Below, piece after piece: positions 22,574-44,894 of a DNA stretch of 64,000 nucleotides. The stretch's first letter is position 1. The number at the start of each line of letters is the position of its first letter. The stretch spans positions 124,001 to 188,000 of the IMG/VR virus record IMGVR_UViG_3300042558_003926; one strand, 5' to 3'. Both the position numbers and the translations under genes were made by a program. A model generated the notes under the pieces. It was not told where the DNA came from, ran no database searches, and worked only from the letters and a program-made list of their open reading frames with translations.

Positions 22574-23062
22574 GGGCCCGCTTTGGATTTGACAGGCGGA
22601 GGTAGTTCTTTGAGATGCAGGCAGTCTTAGATTGGAAAGACTTTAATTACCTATCAAACAATAAACGCAAACGTTTACAATTCTGAGGATATCATGAGTA
22701 TCCCAACTTCACTTACTCGTTCGGTAGTAACTGAAGAGGTTGAGCTAGCTGTTGCAGCCTAACCAATTGGCGGCAACTGCCAATCATAAAAGAAAGTTGC
22801 AAGCTGGCAAGAAAAAAGGTTCGTAGTATTGCCTATTTGACATTGAGTGGAACCTTGAGGATTAGTCCAATACCCATTTAGATCGTCACTATCAATGTCA
22901 GTGAAACTTGGCTAATACCTGGGAGTAGACCAGACTGAGCGTTAAGTCTGAAAGAAAAAAGAAACGCACCCAAAGTTTGTTGATGTCAAACAATCAACTA
23001 AGCCTGTGAATGAGTCCAATGGACATTCGATCTGGACGAGGGTTCGACCCCCTCCGGGTCCA
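22574..23062 (+). ncRNA. ssrA: tmRNA (about 489 nt)
   Basis: 5' GGGCCCG pairs with 3' CGGGTCC+A, giving the G3-U70 Ala determinant. GATTTGACAGG D-loop analog, GGTTCGACCCC T-arm, internal tag ORF ending LAVAA. CCA is not encoded. Confidence 0.93.
22667..22762 (+). other. tmRNA tag reading frame ANVYNSEDIMSIPTSLTRSVVTEEVELAVAA*
   Basis: GCA resume codon after ATAAAC. Ends in AVAA-TAA. Confidence 0.8.
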
Positions 23063-23070
23063 CTAAATTA

Positions 23071-29629: not shown

Positions 29630-31204
29630 ATGAAGTTTTCAGAATTATCGTCAGAGCAAGTATTTGAGATTTCCAAAATATATTGGGATCGAAAGATGGG
29701 ATGGGACGAAAGAATGGAGGCTCTCAGTCAGTATCTAGGTAAATCCGAAAGAACTGTTCAGAAGTGGATATCAAAATTAGGTATCACAGAGAAATCCATA
29801 CAAGAATCCCCTCAGCTAATTAGAGCAAAGGAAAAAAAATTCAATAAGAGAAAAAGAAGATTCATTGTAACTTGGGCTCAAAATGATACCCCAGTTCATG
29901 ATAACTTTATTCTTAATATAGAGACATACGCTAATCATATTAACGCTGACATTCACGTCATAGCAGGAAGATATAAAAATCCAACATCAGTTTTTACTGA
30001 TAAAAAATACGAGCAGTGGCCGGATAGGATTATAAAGTATTTAGATGCAAACAGACACGAGATCCATAAATATATGTGGATAATGTCCGATGTTAAAATA
30101 CAGCCTACTGCGGTTGATCCTATGACTGGGCTTCAGGGTATGACCGGGATAAATTCATGTATATTCGGATCACCCAAGGTTCAGATGGAAACAATTCCAG
30201 TGCTTGAAGGAAATCTACCCAAGATTATGATGACTACCGGCGCATGCACGGTGAAAAATTATACAGATTCAAAATCGGGTAAAAAAGGAGAATTCCATCA
30301 CACATTGGGATTTGTCGTAGTTGAAATTAAAGATGATGAAACATTTTTTGCCCGACAGGTAACAGCAAATGAAGCTGGTGATTTTACCGACCTTTACTAC
30401 AGGGTAGAATATGATCCGGACTCAGATCAAAGCACAGTAAAAACAATAGATAGAGTCTCTGCAATTATCCTGGGAGATGTCCATTATGGACAACATGACC
30501 AGGAGGTTCTTGATAATACTCTGGGAATGTTTAAAAACATCAAGCCTGATTATGTGGTACTTCATGATGTTTTCGATGGTCTTTCTATAAATCATCACGA
30601 ATCCAATGATCCTTTCGTTCAGTATCATCGTGAGATAGAAGGCACTAATTCTCTTAGAAATGAGATAGATGCCATGCTAAATGGTCTGGAGGAGTTCAGA
30701 AACTATAAAACAGTTATAGTAAGAAGTAACCATGATGATTTCTTAGATCGATGGTTAAAGAACACCGACTGGAGAAAGGCAACTACAATGAAGAATTCCA
30801 TAGAATACATGGAGTTTAGTACGTTGCTTCTTAAAGGGGAAGCACCAAATGGGATCATTCCGTACCTCATAAAGCAAAAATTCCCAGATTTTATTACTCT
30901 AGGAAGAAGCGACAGTTTTGTTATAAAAGACTGGGAGTTGGGACAGCACGGTGATATTGGTTCAAATGGAGCCAGAGGTTCTCTTTTACAATTCAGAAAA
31001 TTGAATAGAAAATTAGTGGTAGGACATTATCATTCACCAGGAAGAAAGGACGGAGCACTTGCTGTTGGTACCTCTACTAAACTAAGAGTAAATTACAATC
31101 TAGGACCTAGCGGATGGCTACATTCACATGTGATTATACATGATGATGGTAAGGCACAGCACATAAACTTCATAAAGGGTGGATTTACCACTCTAAAGAA
31201 TTAA
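29630..31204 (+). CDS. HTH-containing calcineurin-like phosphoesterase/nuclease
   Basis: N-terminal HTH (SERTVQKW), GDVH, LHDVFD, SNHD, QHGD, GHYHS. Confidence 0.75.
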   Translation: MKFSELSSEQVFEISKIYWDRKMGWDERMEALSQYLGKSERTVQKWISKLGITEKSIQESPQLIRAKEKKFNKRKRRFIVTWAQNDTPVHDNFILNIETYANHINADIHVIAGRYKNPTSVFTDKKYEQWPDRIIKYLDANRHEIHKYMWIMSDVKIQPTAVDPMTGLQGMTGINSCIFGSPKVQMETIPVLEGNLPKIMMTTGACTVKNYTDSKSGKKGEFHHTLGFVVVEIKDDETFFARQVTANEAGDFTDLYYRVEYDPDSDQSTVKTIDRVSAIILGDVHYGQHDQEVLDNTLGMFKNIKPDYVVLHDVFDGLSINHHESNDPFVQYHREIEGTNSLRNEIDAMLNGLEEFRNYKTVIVRSNHDDFLDRWLKNTDWRKATTMKNSIEYMEFSTLLLKGEAPNGIIPYLIKQKFPDFITLGRSDSFVIKDWELGQHGDIGSNGARGSLLQFRKLNRKLVVGHYHSPGRKDGALAVGTSTKLRVNYNLGPSGWLHSHVIIHDDGKAQHINFIKGGFTTLKN

Positions 31205-31233
31205 TATAGGGTCCAGGTAGACATGCTAATTTG

Positions 31234-31241
31234 GATATATA
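31234..31241 (+). promoter_or_regulatory. Putative late promoter GATATATA
   Basis: Upstream of the homing endonuclease. Confidence 0.55.
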
Positions 31242-31260
31242 ATTTAAAAAAATCTAAATT

Positions 31261-31932
31261 ATGATAATCTACAAAACTACCAATTTGATAAACGGGAAGA
31301 TATACATAGGGCAAGACACCAATAACGATCCGAATTATATGGGTTCAGGAAAAATAATTAAGGAAGCAATTAAAAAATACGGAAAGTCTAGCTTTGTTAA
31401 GGAAATTCTGGAAGAATGTAAAACTATAGATCAACTGAACGAGAGGGAGATTTATTGGATCTCTTTATTTAATTCAACCGATAATAAGATAGGCTATAAT
31501 ATACTAAGGGGTGGTCTGGGATCTAAAGGATTTAAACAATCACCTGATGTTATAGAAAAGATAAGAGAAAATAGCAATTCCGATAAATTTAAGGAAATTA
31601 TGTCTTCTCCAGAAGTTTCTTCTAGGATATCTGAGGGACAATTAAAATCGGAAAAAAAGAAGGAGTTACATTCTTCTGAGGAATACAGAGAAAAAATGAG
31701 CAAAGCTCTTAAGGGTAGGACTTTTACCGACGAGCAGAGAAAAAAAATATCAGAAAGCCTGAAGGGAAAGAAAAAAACCGAGGAACACATAAAAAATCTA
31801 TCGGATTCTCTGAAAAACAGCGAAAAAATAAAAGGAGAAAAAAACCCATTCTATGGAATGAAACATTCTGAGGAAACAAAGGATAAAATAAGAAAATCAA
31901 TCCAAAGTAAAAATAATGATAGAAAAAAATAA
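31261..31932 (+). mobile_element. Free-standing GIY-YIG homing endonuclease with NUMOD3-like repeats
   Basis: IIYKTTN...YIGQ, YMGSG, E...GYN. C-terminal repeats KKISESLKGK and NPFYGMKHSEETK. Confidence 0.92.
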
Positions 31933-32522
31933 TCCACCTCTTCTTCGCGAGCTAAAGTTTATTGCTGGCGTTGATGAGGTGGGCTGAAGGCCGAGGATGT
32001 CTTTCTGGTCCAGTGGTAGCTGCTGCTGTGATACTACCCGATGGATTTTACGATCCGAGAATTAAAGACAGCAAATTAATTAAAAGTCAAAAGAAAAGAG
32101 AGGAAGTAGAACTAATCATAAAGGAGAATGCAATATCATGGGGAATAGGAGCTAGTTCACCTCAAGAGATTGATCAGATGAATATACTTCAGGCAACATT
32201 CTTGGCTATGAAAAGAGCCATAGATTCTTGCTCAAAAAAGCCCGATTTTCTATATGTGGACGGAGATAAATTCCCAGGACATAACGGAATTCCCTACGAG
32301 TGTGTCATAAAGGGTGATTCCAAGATACATTCAATTTCAGCAGCATCTATTCTGGCTAAGGTACACCGGGATAAGCTTATGAGACAGATAGGAATTGAAT
32401 ATCCAGCATATAAATGGGAAACCAATGTTGGGTACGGTACTGCTGACCACATTAATGAGATAAGAAGATCTGGATTAACAAAGCACCACAGAAAAACTTT
32501 TTGTTTAAATTTTATAAAATGA
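31916..32522 (+). CDS. rnhB: Ribonuclease HII interrupted by a 7-nt insertion with in-frame TGA (31985-31987)
   Basis: ATG at 31916 gives MIEKNNPPLLRELKFIAGVDEVG*. The +1 frame continues GRGCLSGPVVAAAV...IKDSK...YVDG...KGD...ISAASILAKVHRD...GYGT...HRKTF. Removing 7 nt yields a 199-aa RNase HII. Confidence 0.85.
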
Positions 32523-32866
32523 ATACTATGGAATCGCAAGAAATCAACCAACCTATGTCAGAATCGGAAGAAATGAAAATCCTTGGTATAGAGGAATTCG
32601 ATAGAGCCGAGTGGGTTTTCCAATTTGATGATGAGGAACCTATTGTTATTGCTTGGAGCAATAGTAAAGAAGAGCCAGGCGAATTATCTTTTATTCTTAA
32701 GGCTAATAGCGAGAGCAATCTAACTTTTAGATCTGCTAATGGATCTAAGAAAATGCAAATATTTGCCCGAAGAATGCCGGATGAAAGAAGAGCTGAACTA
32801 GATGAACTTAGCAGGATAGAGGAAGAAAATATAGAAAAGATAAACCAAACCGAGGTTAAAGAATAA
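32519..32866 (+). CDS. Hypothetical protein
   Basis: ATGA overlap with the rnhB stop. Confidence 0.55.
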   Translation: MNTMESQEINQPMSESEEMKILGIEEFDRAEWVFQFDDEEPIVIAWSNSKEEPGELSFILKANSESNLTFRSANGSKKMQIFARRMPDERRAELDELSRIEEENIEKINQTEVKE

Positions 32867-32871
32867 TTATT

Positions 32872-33942
32872 ATGAATAAAACTAAATTCGATTTCGATGA
32901 TATCCTGATTCAACCTTCTATAGTTAGCGATATATCTTCTCGTAGTGAGGTTACCGTTACATATAATGATGGGTACCTCCCTCTATTTACTGCTCCTATG
33001 GATACTGTAGTTAGCGAGAATAATATTGAACTTTTTCAGGCTAAAGGGATAAGAGTTGTGAAGCCAAGAACCCTGAATACACCATACAGTGGTTATGGAA
33101 CGGATTTCAATGAATTCATTTCTCTTGGTTTAGACGAATTCATTAAAATTTATCTAGGTAAAAAAAAGAATGAATATGATGACCAGATGTTTATTCTCAT
33201 CGACATTGCAAATGGGCATATGAGAAAGCTTATTGATTCTGTTAAGAAAGCTAAAGAAACATACGGTGATTCTTTAATTCTCATGGTGGGTAATATAGCC
33301 AATCCTAAGACATACTCCGATCTTTCCGAAGCAGGAGCTGATTTTGTAAGAGTTGGGATAGGAAACGGCGGAGGTTGCTTAACGACGGTTCAAACTGGAG
33401 TTGGCTATCCTATGGCATCTTTAATTAAAGAATGTTACATCGAAAGCTGTTTGATGAATACCCCCGCGAAGATTGTTGCTGATGGCGGATTTAAAAGCTA
33501 TTCTGATATTATAAAAGCTCTTGGACTAGGAGCAGATTATGTTATGCTTGGTTCAATATTGAATAAAGCTTTGGAGAGCGCAGGTGACACATACTTAGCT
33601 AATACTAAAGGTGAGGGATGGACTGAGCCGGGTGAAAGGATCAATCAATATGCTGCTGAGACAGAGAATCTGTTCAAGTACGGTACTAAGATGTTTAAGA
33701 AGTTTAGAGGGATGAGTACCAAGGAGGCTCAGAAGGCTATGGGTAAGACAGAGTTGAAAACTAGCGAAGGAGTTAGTCGAATGCAACCAGTAGAATACAC
33801 ATTAGAAGGATGGACTGAAAACTTTAGAAGCTACCTTTCCTCCGCAATGAGCTATTCCGATGCAGCCGATCTTAAGAGCTTTATAGGTCTTGCTAAGTTC
33901 AACTACGTAACTCCAAATTCTTTAAACAGATATAAAAAATGA
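32872..33942 (+). CDS. IMPDH/GMP-reductase family protein
   Basis: FDFDDILI, APMDTV, IDIANGH, VGNIAN, VGIGNGGGCLT, ADGG, GADYVMLGS, FRGMS, SEG. Confidence 0.88.
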   Translation: MNKTKFDFDDILIQPSIVSDISSRSEVTVTYNDGYLPLFTAPMDTVVSENNIELFQAKGIRVVKPRTLNTPYSGYGTDFNEFISLGLDEFIKIYLGKKKNEYDDQMFILIDIANGHMRKLIDSVKKAKETYGDSLILMVGNIANPKTYSDLSEAGADFVRVGIGNGGGCLTTVQTGVGYPMASLIKECYIESCLMNTPAKIVADGGFKSYSDIIKALGLGADYVMLGSILNKALESAGDTYLANTKGEGWTEPGERINQYAAETENLFKYGTKMFKKFRGMSTKEAQKAMGKTELKTSEGVSRMQPVEYTLEGWTENFRSYLSSAMSYSDAADLKSFIGLAKFNYVTPNSLNRYKK

Positions 33943-44810: not shown

Positions 44811-44881
44811 AGTCAGGTGGCTTAGTGGTAAAGCCCGACCTTTTAAGTCGGAGTACGTAGGTTCGATTCCTGCCCTGACTA
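44811..44881 (+). tRNA. tRNA-Lys (anticodon TTT at 44842-44844)
   Basis: Acceptor stem AGTCAGG/CCTGACT, D-arm GCTT/AAGC, anticodon stem CCGAC/GTCGG with loop CTTTTAA, T-loop TTCGATT. No encoded CCA. Confidence 0.9.
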
Positions 44882-44894
44882 CTAAAAACAAAAT

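Follow-up and report, generated by a model that had tools for sequence, protein, structure and literature searches.

How does a phage make an enzyme whose gene carries a stop codon inside its catalytic motif? The question is posed by rnhB, the gene for ribonuclease HII (RNase HII), in a 64,000-nucleotide (nt) stretch of DNA, here called the window, that covers positions 124,001 to 188,000 of the IMG/VR record IMGVR_UViG_3300042558_003926 and comes from a jumbo phage (identical contig, 289,651 bp). The upstream frame of this rnhB starts with an ATG at position 31916 of the window, reads MIEKNNPPLLRELKFIAGVDEVG and closes with a glycine codon, GGC, and a TGA stop; one base further on, a second GGC opens the remainder of the gene. 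The interruption belongs to a mobile cassette that also carries a homing endonuclease gene, and related loci occur both with the cassette (cassette alleles) and without it (empty alleles). Our answer, drawn from comparison of these alleles, is that rnhB is probably expressed through a programmed translational hop from one glycine codon to the next, a stop-hop form of bypassing.

The catalytic Asp-Glu pair of RNase HII is encoded upstream of the stop, in an N-terminal exon (N-exon), and the DSK, VDGD and KGDS motifs downstream of it (Table 1). The two pieces were searched separately, and no joined sequence was used in any search or fold. The downstream piece matches the Pfam family RNase_HII (PF01351) at 8.9e-31, from profile position 7, which is where a join to GVDEV would be expected, and T. 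maritima RNase HII (PDB 3o3g) at 5.5e-38, in an alignment to the solved structure that begins at the landing glycine. Membership of the RNase HII family is given by this domain match together with the catalytic residues, the DSK, VDGD and KGDS motifs being found in all alleles. Joining the pieces at the two glycines restores the conserved protein with no residue gained or lost, whether judged against the empty alleles, Pfam or the PDB. The product would have 22 + 177 = 199 residues, the two glycine codons being counted once, as an earlier note on this DNA had predicted for a GGC-to-GGC skip into an intact downstream part. The rnhB and endonuclease elements all lie where that note had placed them, including the overlap between the endonuclease gene (Pfam NUMOD3, PHROG 314) and the start of rnhB, which amounts to 17 nt in different frames.

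Table 1. Positions in the window of the parts of the rnhB locus, followed by neighbouring genes and RNA genes.
Feature	Position	Strand	Description or basis
Mobile cassette	31205..31988	+	About 780 nt, 5' boundary approximate; 5' leader, endonuclease gene, replacement rnhB N-exon, stop and extra base
GIY-YIG/NUMOD3 homing endonuclease gene, 223 aa	31261..31932	+	Pfam, PHROG
N-terminal exon of rnhB, cassette-borne, 23 codons	31916..31984	+	New start, 14-residue leader with invariant Pro-Pro, FIAGVDEVG
Conserved predicted mRNA hairpin	31933..31983	+	Outer 8-bp stem UCCACCUC/GAGGUGGG; inner stems CGC/GCG and AGC/GCU
Take-off codon GGC (Gly)	31982..31984	+	Invariant in 19/19 cassette alleles
Stop TGA (31985-87) and one extra A (31988)	31985..31988	+	With the landing codon, a 7-nt coding gap
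Landing codon GGC, host-derived Gly of the GRG motif	31989..31991	+	Decoding would restart at CGA, 31992-94
Downstream part of rnhB, host-derived, 177 codons and stop (32520-22)	31989..32522	+	Opens GRGCLSGP; DSK, VDGD, KGDS and AASILAK intact
T5 A1-like 'DNA transfer protein' with metallophosphoesterase region	29630-31204		Neighbour gene of the rnhB locus; PHROG 1745, 3e-149
IMPDH/GMP-reductase-family dehydrogenase	32872-33942		Neighbour gene of the rnhB locus; Pfam PF00478, 7e-42
Phage-encoded transfer-messenger RNA (tmRNA)	22574-23065	+	Rfam RF00023, 85.5 bits; ARAGORN tag peptide EEVELAVAA
tRNA-Lys(UUU)	44811-44882		

A protein-guided scan gave 29 related loci, and further ones came from scanning viral, metagenome and genome collections for DNA patterns; the matches listed include 19 distinct cassette alleles, that of the window (WIN) among them, and 13 distinct empty alleles. 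In all 13 empty alleles rnhB lies directly after the upstream A1-like gene and reads (I/V)AGVDEV and then GRG without a break, the length of the motif being constant. All 19 cassette alleles have a replacement 5' end and an N-exon of 23-25 codons that ends in GAGGTGGGC (GAG GTG GGC), after which come a stop, 0-1 extra base (A or T) and the host-derived GGN-Arg-Gly. Eight forms of this junction are found: TGA-A-GGC, TGA-A-GGA, TGA-GGA, TGA-GGC, TAA-GGC, TAG-T-GGA, TAG-A-GGA and TAG-A-GGT. The stop may thus be TGA, TAG or TAA, but the position 3' of the take-off codon is a stop in every one of the 19 alleles, never a sense codon and never TGG. GAG GTG GGC is likewise invariant among them, but in the empty alleles these Glu and Val codons vary without restriction, and GGC is the rarest glycine codon of the phage (63 of 1011, or 6%). 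Viral and metagenome contigs were also scanned for the middle of the N-exon without regard to the junction; among the matches listed there was no revertant, that is, no copy of the N-exon fused without the stop.

The same comparison modifies the picture of a 7-nt insert in a native gene, set between identical glycine codons, from which the earlier note had started. The 7-nt gap and the GGC/GGC pair hold for the window; however, the cassette has contributed all of the gene's 5' end (31916-31988), and three unrelated alleles (L007, L023 and L168) have a gap of 6 nt, with one amino acid encoded by 9 nt; the others have 7 nt. The landing codon is always glycine, but it is GGC in 11 alleles, GGA in seven and GGT in one, so that it fully matches the take-off codon in 11 only and in two positions out of three in the other eight of the 19.

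Could the interruption be removed before translation, or not be there at all? The first would require RNA editing, an excision of 6-7 nt or a subpopulation of genomes without the insert, and the second an artefact of sequencing or assembly; we consider all of these very unlikely. The same junction recurs in at least 17 IMG/VR datasets and in further metagenomes, with heritable variants, on which grounds assembly error was rejected; 19 distinct alleles from many independent metagenomes are also far more than chance would produce. There is no homopolymer on which a polymerase might slip, and we know of no system that removes 6-7 nt. The region matches no Rfam family or intron-like RNA, a group I intron or other RNA family giving no match even at E = 1. 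A duplicated glycine codon with a stop is, moreover, the specific signature of tRNA re-pairing. An alternative genetic code was rejected for another reason: all three stop codons occur at the site, and all three end normal genes of the window.

The cassette takes the place of about 55 nt of native sequence, comprising intergenic DNA and the native 5' end of rnhB. When cassette alleles are compared with empty ones such as L004, homology breaks at the stop codon of the upstream gene and restarts at the landing codon. The endonuclease open reading frame (ORF) matches Pfam NUMOD3 at 2.4e-15 (56.6 bits, with a cut-off of 20.4) and PHROG 314, 'homing endonuclease', at 4e-44; PHROG 5123 is likewise a homing endonuclease family, and the Pfam GIY-YIG score of 21.6 bits is slightly below its cut-off of 22.6. 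The residues IYK...YIG, the Glu of ERE and the Asn of GYN are kept across six diverged copies. A motif at the 5' end of the cassette, GGGTCCAGGTAGnCAT (31207-31225), is common to the cassette alleles. It is retained upstream of the N-exon in L015, L024, L036, L040 and L168, internal endonuclease deletions included, is missing from the clean endonuclease deletions L038 and L105, and may act as a promoter or regulatory site or mark a recombination boundary.

Several features mark the cassette as mobile. Presence and absence are polymorphic, with cassette and empty alleles interleaved within every host subclade, and the insert is found with the cassette only, never in empty alleles, bearing out the link to the endonuclease suspected earlier. 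Cassette subtypes are clade-specific; the TAG forms, for example, all fall in one clade. In the pairs formed by WIN, L005 and L106, identity is 97.5-99% across the cassette and 97.5-100% across endonuclease gene and N-exon (with 0.8-2.5% nucleotide differences in the endonuclease gene), both flanks have a synonymous divergence (dS) above 1, and the jump in divergence falls no more than 1-2 codons from the landing codon. L019, which has the cassette, and L020, which is empty, are nearly identical, and their few differences gather at the cassette edges: four of seven downstream lie within 24 nt and 11 of 14 upstream within 112 nt. This clustering is a co-conversion footprint. The stop insert, replacement exon and endonuclease gene form one mobile unit that enters empty rnhB alleles by recombination, and the insert plausibly shields its carrier from the carrier's own endonuclease.

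Between subtypes the endonuclease genes differ by a dS of 1.1 to more than 3, which is saturated, which implies a long history for the arrangement; their ratio of non-synonymous to synonymous divergence (dN/dS) is 0.04-0.1. By these sequence measures the cassette is old and its endonuclease under selection. The endonuclease is nonetheless full length in only eight of the 19 cassette alleles; in the other 11 it is a stub of 10-47 codons or is cleanly deleted, through several independent events, and all 11 keep the N-exon, the stop and an intact downstream frame of 176-177 codons. One very recent loss is caught in the act: L040 (319-kb contig) and L069 are identical in N-exon, junction and downstream sequence, but L069 has the full endonuclease and L040 a 30-codon stub. 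In L022 and L027 (2640-2930), a pair of unrelated small ORFs, one of them with a hydrophobic stretch, stands in the place of the endonuclease, and the N-exon, stop and rnhB are retained.

Is the interrupted gene simply dead? In every cassette allele that is readable to its end (15 of 15) the downstream frame keeps its 176-177 codons and every catalytic motif, and its dN/dS is 0.01-0.10, like that of the empty alleles, or 0.006-0.10 overall. The comparison of rnhB with and without the cassette, which the earlier note had proposed as a check, therefore finds empty alleles that are unbroken and no relaxed selection downstream of the interruption. A pseudogene could look intact if fresh invasions kept producing it, or if recombination re-imported the downstream sequence. 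The cassette is mobile, its alleles interleave with empty ones in every subclade, and L019 and L020 are near-identical outside short co-conversion tracts, all of which would suit such a history. The 11 alleles without an endonuclease, however, cannot home, yet they have no second lesion. Since recombination with empty alleles could mimic a low dN/dS elsewhere, the informative case is that of L038 and L105, sisters (100% bootstrap) that share the same clean endonuclease deletion and are unable to home. They differ by 57 synonymous and two non-synonymous codon changes, giving a dN/dS of 0.006 over a dS of 0.86 (binomial p = 2e-34).

The N-exon exists in the interrupted state only, and it keeps IAGVDEVG through synonymous change. 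Across the 19 alleles its codons for I, G, V and D show synonymous differences only (ATT/ATA, GGC/GGT, GTT/GTG/GTA/GTC and GAT/GAC), the sole replacements being F to Y and V to L, both of which are tolerated in RNase HII. That an exon confined to interrupted genes should retain RNase HII residues in this way implies that the enzyme is translated with this exon in it. Nor would loss of function explain why GAGGTGGGC and the stop are invariant although the endonuclease dS is saturated, or why the stop always remains a stop and never becomes TGG. We consider it improbable, then, that the cassette kills rnhB; these patterns indicate that the interrupted gene is functional, with both pieces subject to strong purifying selection even where the endonuclease has been lost.

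How might such a gene be read? In the hop that we propose, a ribosome translating the N-exon would arrive with the take-off GGC in its P site and the stop in its A site. It would not terminate; instead, the peptidyl-tRNA-Gly would unpair, the mRNA would slide by 7 nt (6 nt in some relatives) and the same tRNA would re-pair at the next GGN. Decoding would then restart at the Arg codon, giving the unbroken ...GVDEVG-RGC... of a 199-residue RNase HII. Given that the gap is 6 or 7 nt, the stop TGA, TAG or TAA and the extra base A or T, a hop is the sole mechanism that would give the same product from all alleles, and re-pairing from GGC to GGN would account for the duplicated glycine codon beside the stop. 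The bypass suggested in the earlier note is supported, having withstood all of the computational tests run.

Other kinds of recoding have nevertheless to be weighed. A +1 frameshift at GGC-UGA-A in the 7-nt alleles, with readthrough of the stop in the 6-nt alleles, would yield DEVG-X-GRG, with two extra residues; the predicted junction peptide is FIAGVDEVGEGR by +1 frameshift and FIAGVDEVGR by hop. Selection on the downstream piece cannot by itself separate these schemes from a hop, and a stop in the A site close to an SD-like (Shine-Dalgarno-like) GAGGUG resembles the +1 site of prfB. But frameshifting and readthrough would be two mechanisms in close relatives, switching repeatedly through 1-nt indels, and would add Glu, Ser, Arg or a readthrough residue to a motif whose length is constant in the 13 empty alleles and in solved RNase HII structures. 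The tRNA-Gly cannot re-pair in the +1 frame, on GCU. The spacing between the SD-like element and the shift codon is 0 nt, not 3 nt, and Bacteroidia ribosomes, the probable ones here, normally ignore SD sequences. A frameshift or readthrough would also leave the duplicated glycine codon pointless. We regard this explanation as unlikely.

More improbable still is an enzyme in two pieces, in which a 23-residue N-peptide and a separately started C-terminal fragment would function, associated or not. Genes divided by a homing endonuclease into parts that still work are known, as in nrdA/mobE of Aeh1, and the window does have an in-frame ATG (31974) and TTG codons before the landing codon. Six alleles (L007, L022, L023, L024, L027 and L168), however, have no ATG, GTG or TTG that could serve the downstream frame; the first in-frame GTG past the landing codon is not conserved, and a fragment begun there would miss the catalytic Asp-Glu. 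Furthermore, the endonuclease gene lies upstream of both pieces rather than between them. On these counts independent initiation has the most remote chance of explaining the locus, and we return to the hop.

What could move the ribosome? The hop is probably driven or biased by the predicted hairpin, whose strong outer 8-bp stem uses the final 8 nt leading up to the take-off codon; as the hairpin zips up where the mRNA leaves the ribosome, it would draw the message forward and put the take-off codon out of reach. The earlier note had pointed to CCACCTC (31934-40), which is indeed the exact complement of GAGGTGG (31976-82). The 3' arm finishes on the second base of the take-off codon, and the inner part of the hairpin lies 9 nt 5' of take-off. 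The minimum free energy is about -28 kcal/mol, with z-scores of -4.1 to -4.9 in four cassette subtypes compared with 0 to +1.4 in six empty alleles, and pairing is held in 99% of cells compared with 30-63% in slid controls. Third-codon positions are invariant at five of eight paired sites but at none of eight unpaired ones (Fisher p = 0.013), and the dS of the N-exon is 3-10-fold below that of the endonuclease gene of the same cassette and also below that of both flanks. For gene 60 of phage T4, forward movement has been proposed to be driven by a stem-loop on the 5' side, 9 nt from take-off, and by pairing of the mRNA as it exits the ribosome, and by analogy the hairpin here may have the same role.

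Other stimulators are less evident. The gap, at 6-7 nt, contains no take-off stem-loop for the A site, and no conserved structure lies 3' of the stop; a 3' barrier structure is predicted in the window alone and was rejected because it is not conserved. The leader peptide, (N/D)PP(L/Q/H)(L/S)(R/Q)ELK(F/Y), is conserved among cassette alleles, and its Pro-Pro is invariant. A GAGGUG-type motif ends 6-7 nt 5' of the landing codon across the alleles, at 7 nt in the window, as the earlier note had observed; its SD role is nonetheless doubtful, since the genes of this phage lack SD sequences and the probable host ignores them. Among the 50 window ORFs of at least 150 aa, an SD core is present at only four start sites, and A is enriched in the leaders, peaking at -3, -6, -9 and -12, which is an initiation signature of the Bacteroidota type. 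These SD-poor, A-rich leaders, together with the hosts of the nearest isolated-phage homologs of rnhB's neighbouring gene (Maribacter and Flavobacterium), suggest that the phage probably infects a member of the Bacteroidia. Bacteroidia ribosomes sequester the anti-SD, and their prfB frameshifting normally runs without SD pairing. An SD sequence was accordingly downgraded as the main stimulator, and GAGGUG is more safely read as the 3' arm of the hairpin, the host assignment being itself indirect.

Several considerations weigh against the hop. Support for it is comparative throughout. With a tRNA-Gly(GCC), the seven GGA landing codons would give a wobble mismatch, and the strong GGC:GCC pairing would have to be broken. 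A move of 6-7 nt takes the 3' arm of the hairpin only partly out of the ribosome, and the covariation of the hairpin amounts to one compensatory pair, a score equalled by 189 of 500 shuffles, there being little variation. Synthetic stop-hops are inefficient, at about 1%, and the yield here may be low. Cassette and empty alleles recombine (L019 and L020 differ by a dS of 0.06), so that part of the low dN/dS may have accrued in uninterrupted genes. The host and its translation apparatus, finally, are inferred.

Some features around the gene bear on its expression. The TGA that ends rnhB shares the sequence ATGA (32519-22) with the ATG of the next ORF, which ends at 32866; in view of this overlap, expression of that ORF may be coupled to ribosomes that finish rnhB, that is, to successful hopping. 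The tmRNA of the phage (Table 1) may be relevant to ribosomes that fail the hop. The window as a whole has a GC content of 36%. Deposited phage DNA gave one weak match, in which 31234-31502, the 5' part of the endonuclease gene, is 69.5% identical to LR756500.1, an unannotated 462-kb 'uncultured phage'. In bacterial genomes the cassette pattern gave 12 matches, all by chance and in GC-rich genomes. A crude screen of 80 loci for the same architecture behind distant endonuclease homologs returned the rnhB cassette alone, the other matches looking like chance or having an ordinary Met nearby.

Programmed bypassing has essentially one well-studied bacterial case, gene 60 of phage T4 and its homologs, to which a short-gap candidate in phage phiHau3 can be added. 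The resemblance to the gene 60/MobA element (Huang 1988; Bonocora 2011; Manning & Atkins, bioRxiv 10.1101/2022.08.31.505936), already drawn in the earlier note, proves a close parallel, though not a homologous one. In both, an endonuclease gene is followed by an N-terminal extension that overlaps it out of frame (by 17 nt here and 8-32 nt in gene 60), a segment re-encodes the replaced target residues ('HomR'), and a Gly take-off codon with an adjacent stop precedes an insert running to a Gly landing codon. Both have many lineages that lack the endonuclease yet retain the bypass, and some clades of gene 60 elements have GIY-YIG endonucleases. Both also place a stem-loop 5' of take-off, at a distance of about 9 nt, and a GAG-type motif 5' of the landing codon, at 6-7 nt; the latter is the mini-SD of gene 60 elements. 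There is, however, no sequence homology, and the phage group and leader are different; the target is topoisomerase II in gene 60 but RNase HII here. At 6-7 nt, compared with 50 (20 in one gene 60 clade), the gap leaves no room for an A-site take-off stem-loop, and the codons at the rnhB site often match in only two positions out of three. The rnhB cassette lies upstream of a whole gene and supplies its start, whereas that of gene 60 splits its gene in two, and the host of the rnhB phage probably does not use SD sequences. The rnhB cassette is thus an analogue, not a member, of the gene 60 element family.

The other bacterial candidate, in the terminase of the Streptomyces phage phiHau3 (PMC10732093), has inserts of 10 nt, or 7 nt in one prophage. 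There, as here, a short insert breaks a conserved motif of a phage enzyme, an essential one in phiHau3, frameshifting was argued against because extra residues would enter the conserved junction, and a 5' stem-loop is proposed, together with a flanking SD immediately ahead of the short gap. The trigger in phiHau3, in contrast, is the rare sense codon UUA and not a stop, no homing endonuclease is involved and just three genes are known. That bypass has been proposed to be regulatory, sensing host growth phase, and has partial experimental support from a junction peptide obtained in E. coli after UUA was changed to UAA (PMC10732093). In the synthetic stop-hops of E. coli (Weiss et al. 1987; O'Connor et al. 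1989), a stop stands between codons that match, and 9 nt encode one amino acid, which is the form of L007, L023 and L168 (GGC-stop-GGN); those constructs were artificial, hopped at a low level and had no stimulatory signals, whereas the rnhB site is natural, conserved and selected, with a hairpin and a leader. The mitochondrial 'byps' of Magnusiomyces capitatus differ in that they are GC-rich, 27-55 nt long and present at 81 sites, with relaxed decoding, an unused codon instead of a stop and no endonuclease. The prfB (RF2) site shares the A-site stop and the SD-like element immediately 5' of it, but shifts by one base onto an overlapping codon, with its SD 3 nt upstream; at rnhB the SD-like sequence abuts the P-site codon, the move is 6-7 nt and the frame varies.

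If the hop is real, a homing endonuclease cassette has, on an independent occasion, come to break a catalytic motif while carrying the signals by which ribosomes skip the break. It would also provide a minimal test system, consisting of take-off codon, stop, 0-1 nt, landing codon, one hairpin and a 14-residue leader. Its roughly 19 natural variants would allow tests of the features behind take-off, direction and landing, and could show whether pairing of the mRNA on the exit side is enough by itself to move a ribosome. Because gene callers break up or shorten rnhB, similar short hops may hide among the 'pseudogenes' that lie beside homing endonucleases. A 2016 review knew of no natural in-frame stop-hop, although shorter counterparts of bypassing had 'long been presumed', and we found no report in the literature of a natural stop-hop or of bypassing in RNase HII. 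We lean, on balance, towards the view that the rnhB site is the first natural, selected stop-hop, of 6-7 nt, that it arose independently of gene 60 as the self-repair or immunity module of a GIY-YIG cassette, portable together with its leader peptide and an exit-side hairpin driver, and that it operates in non-SD translation of the Bacteroidota type.

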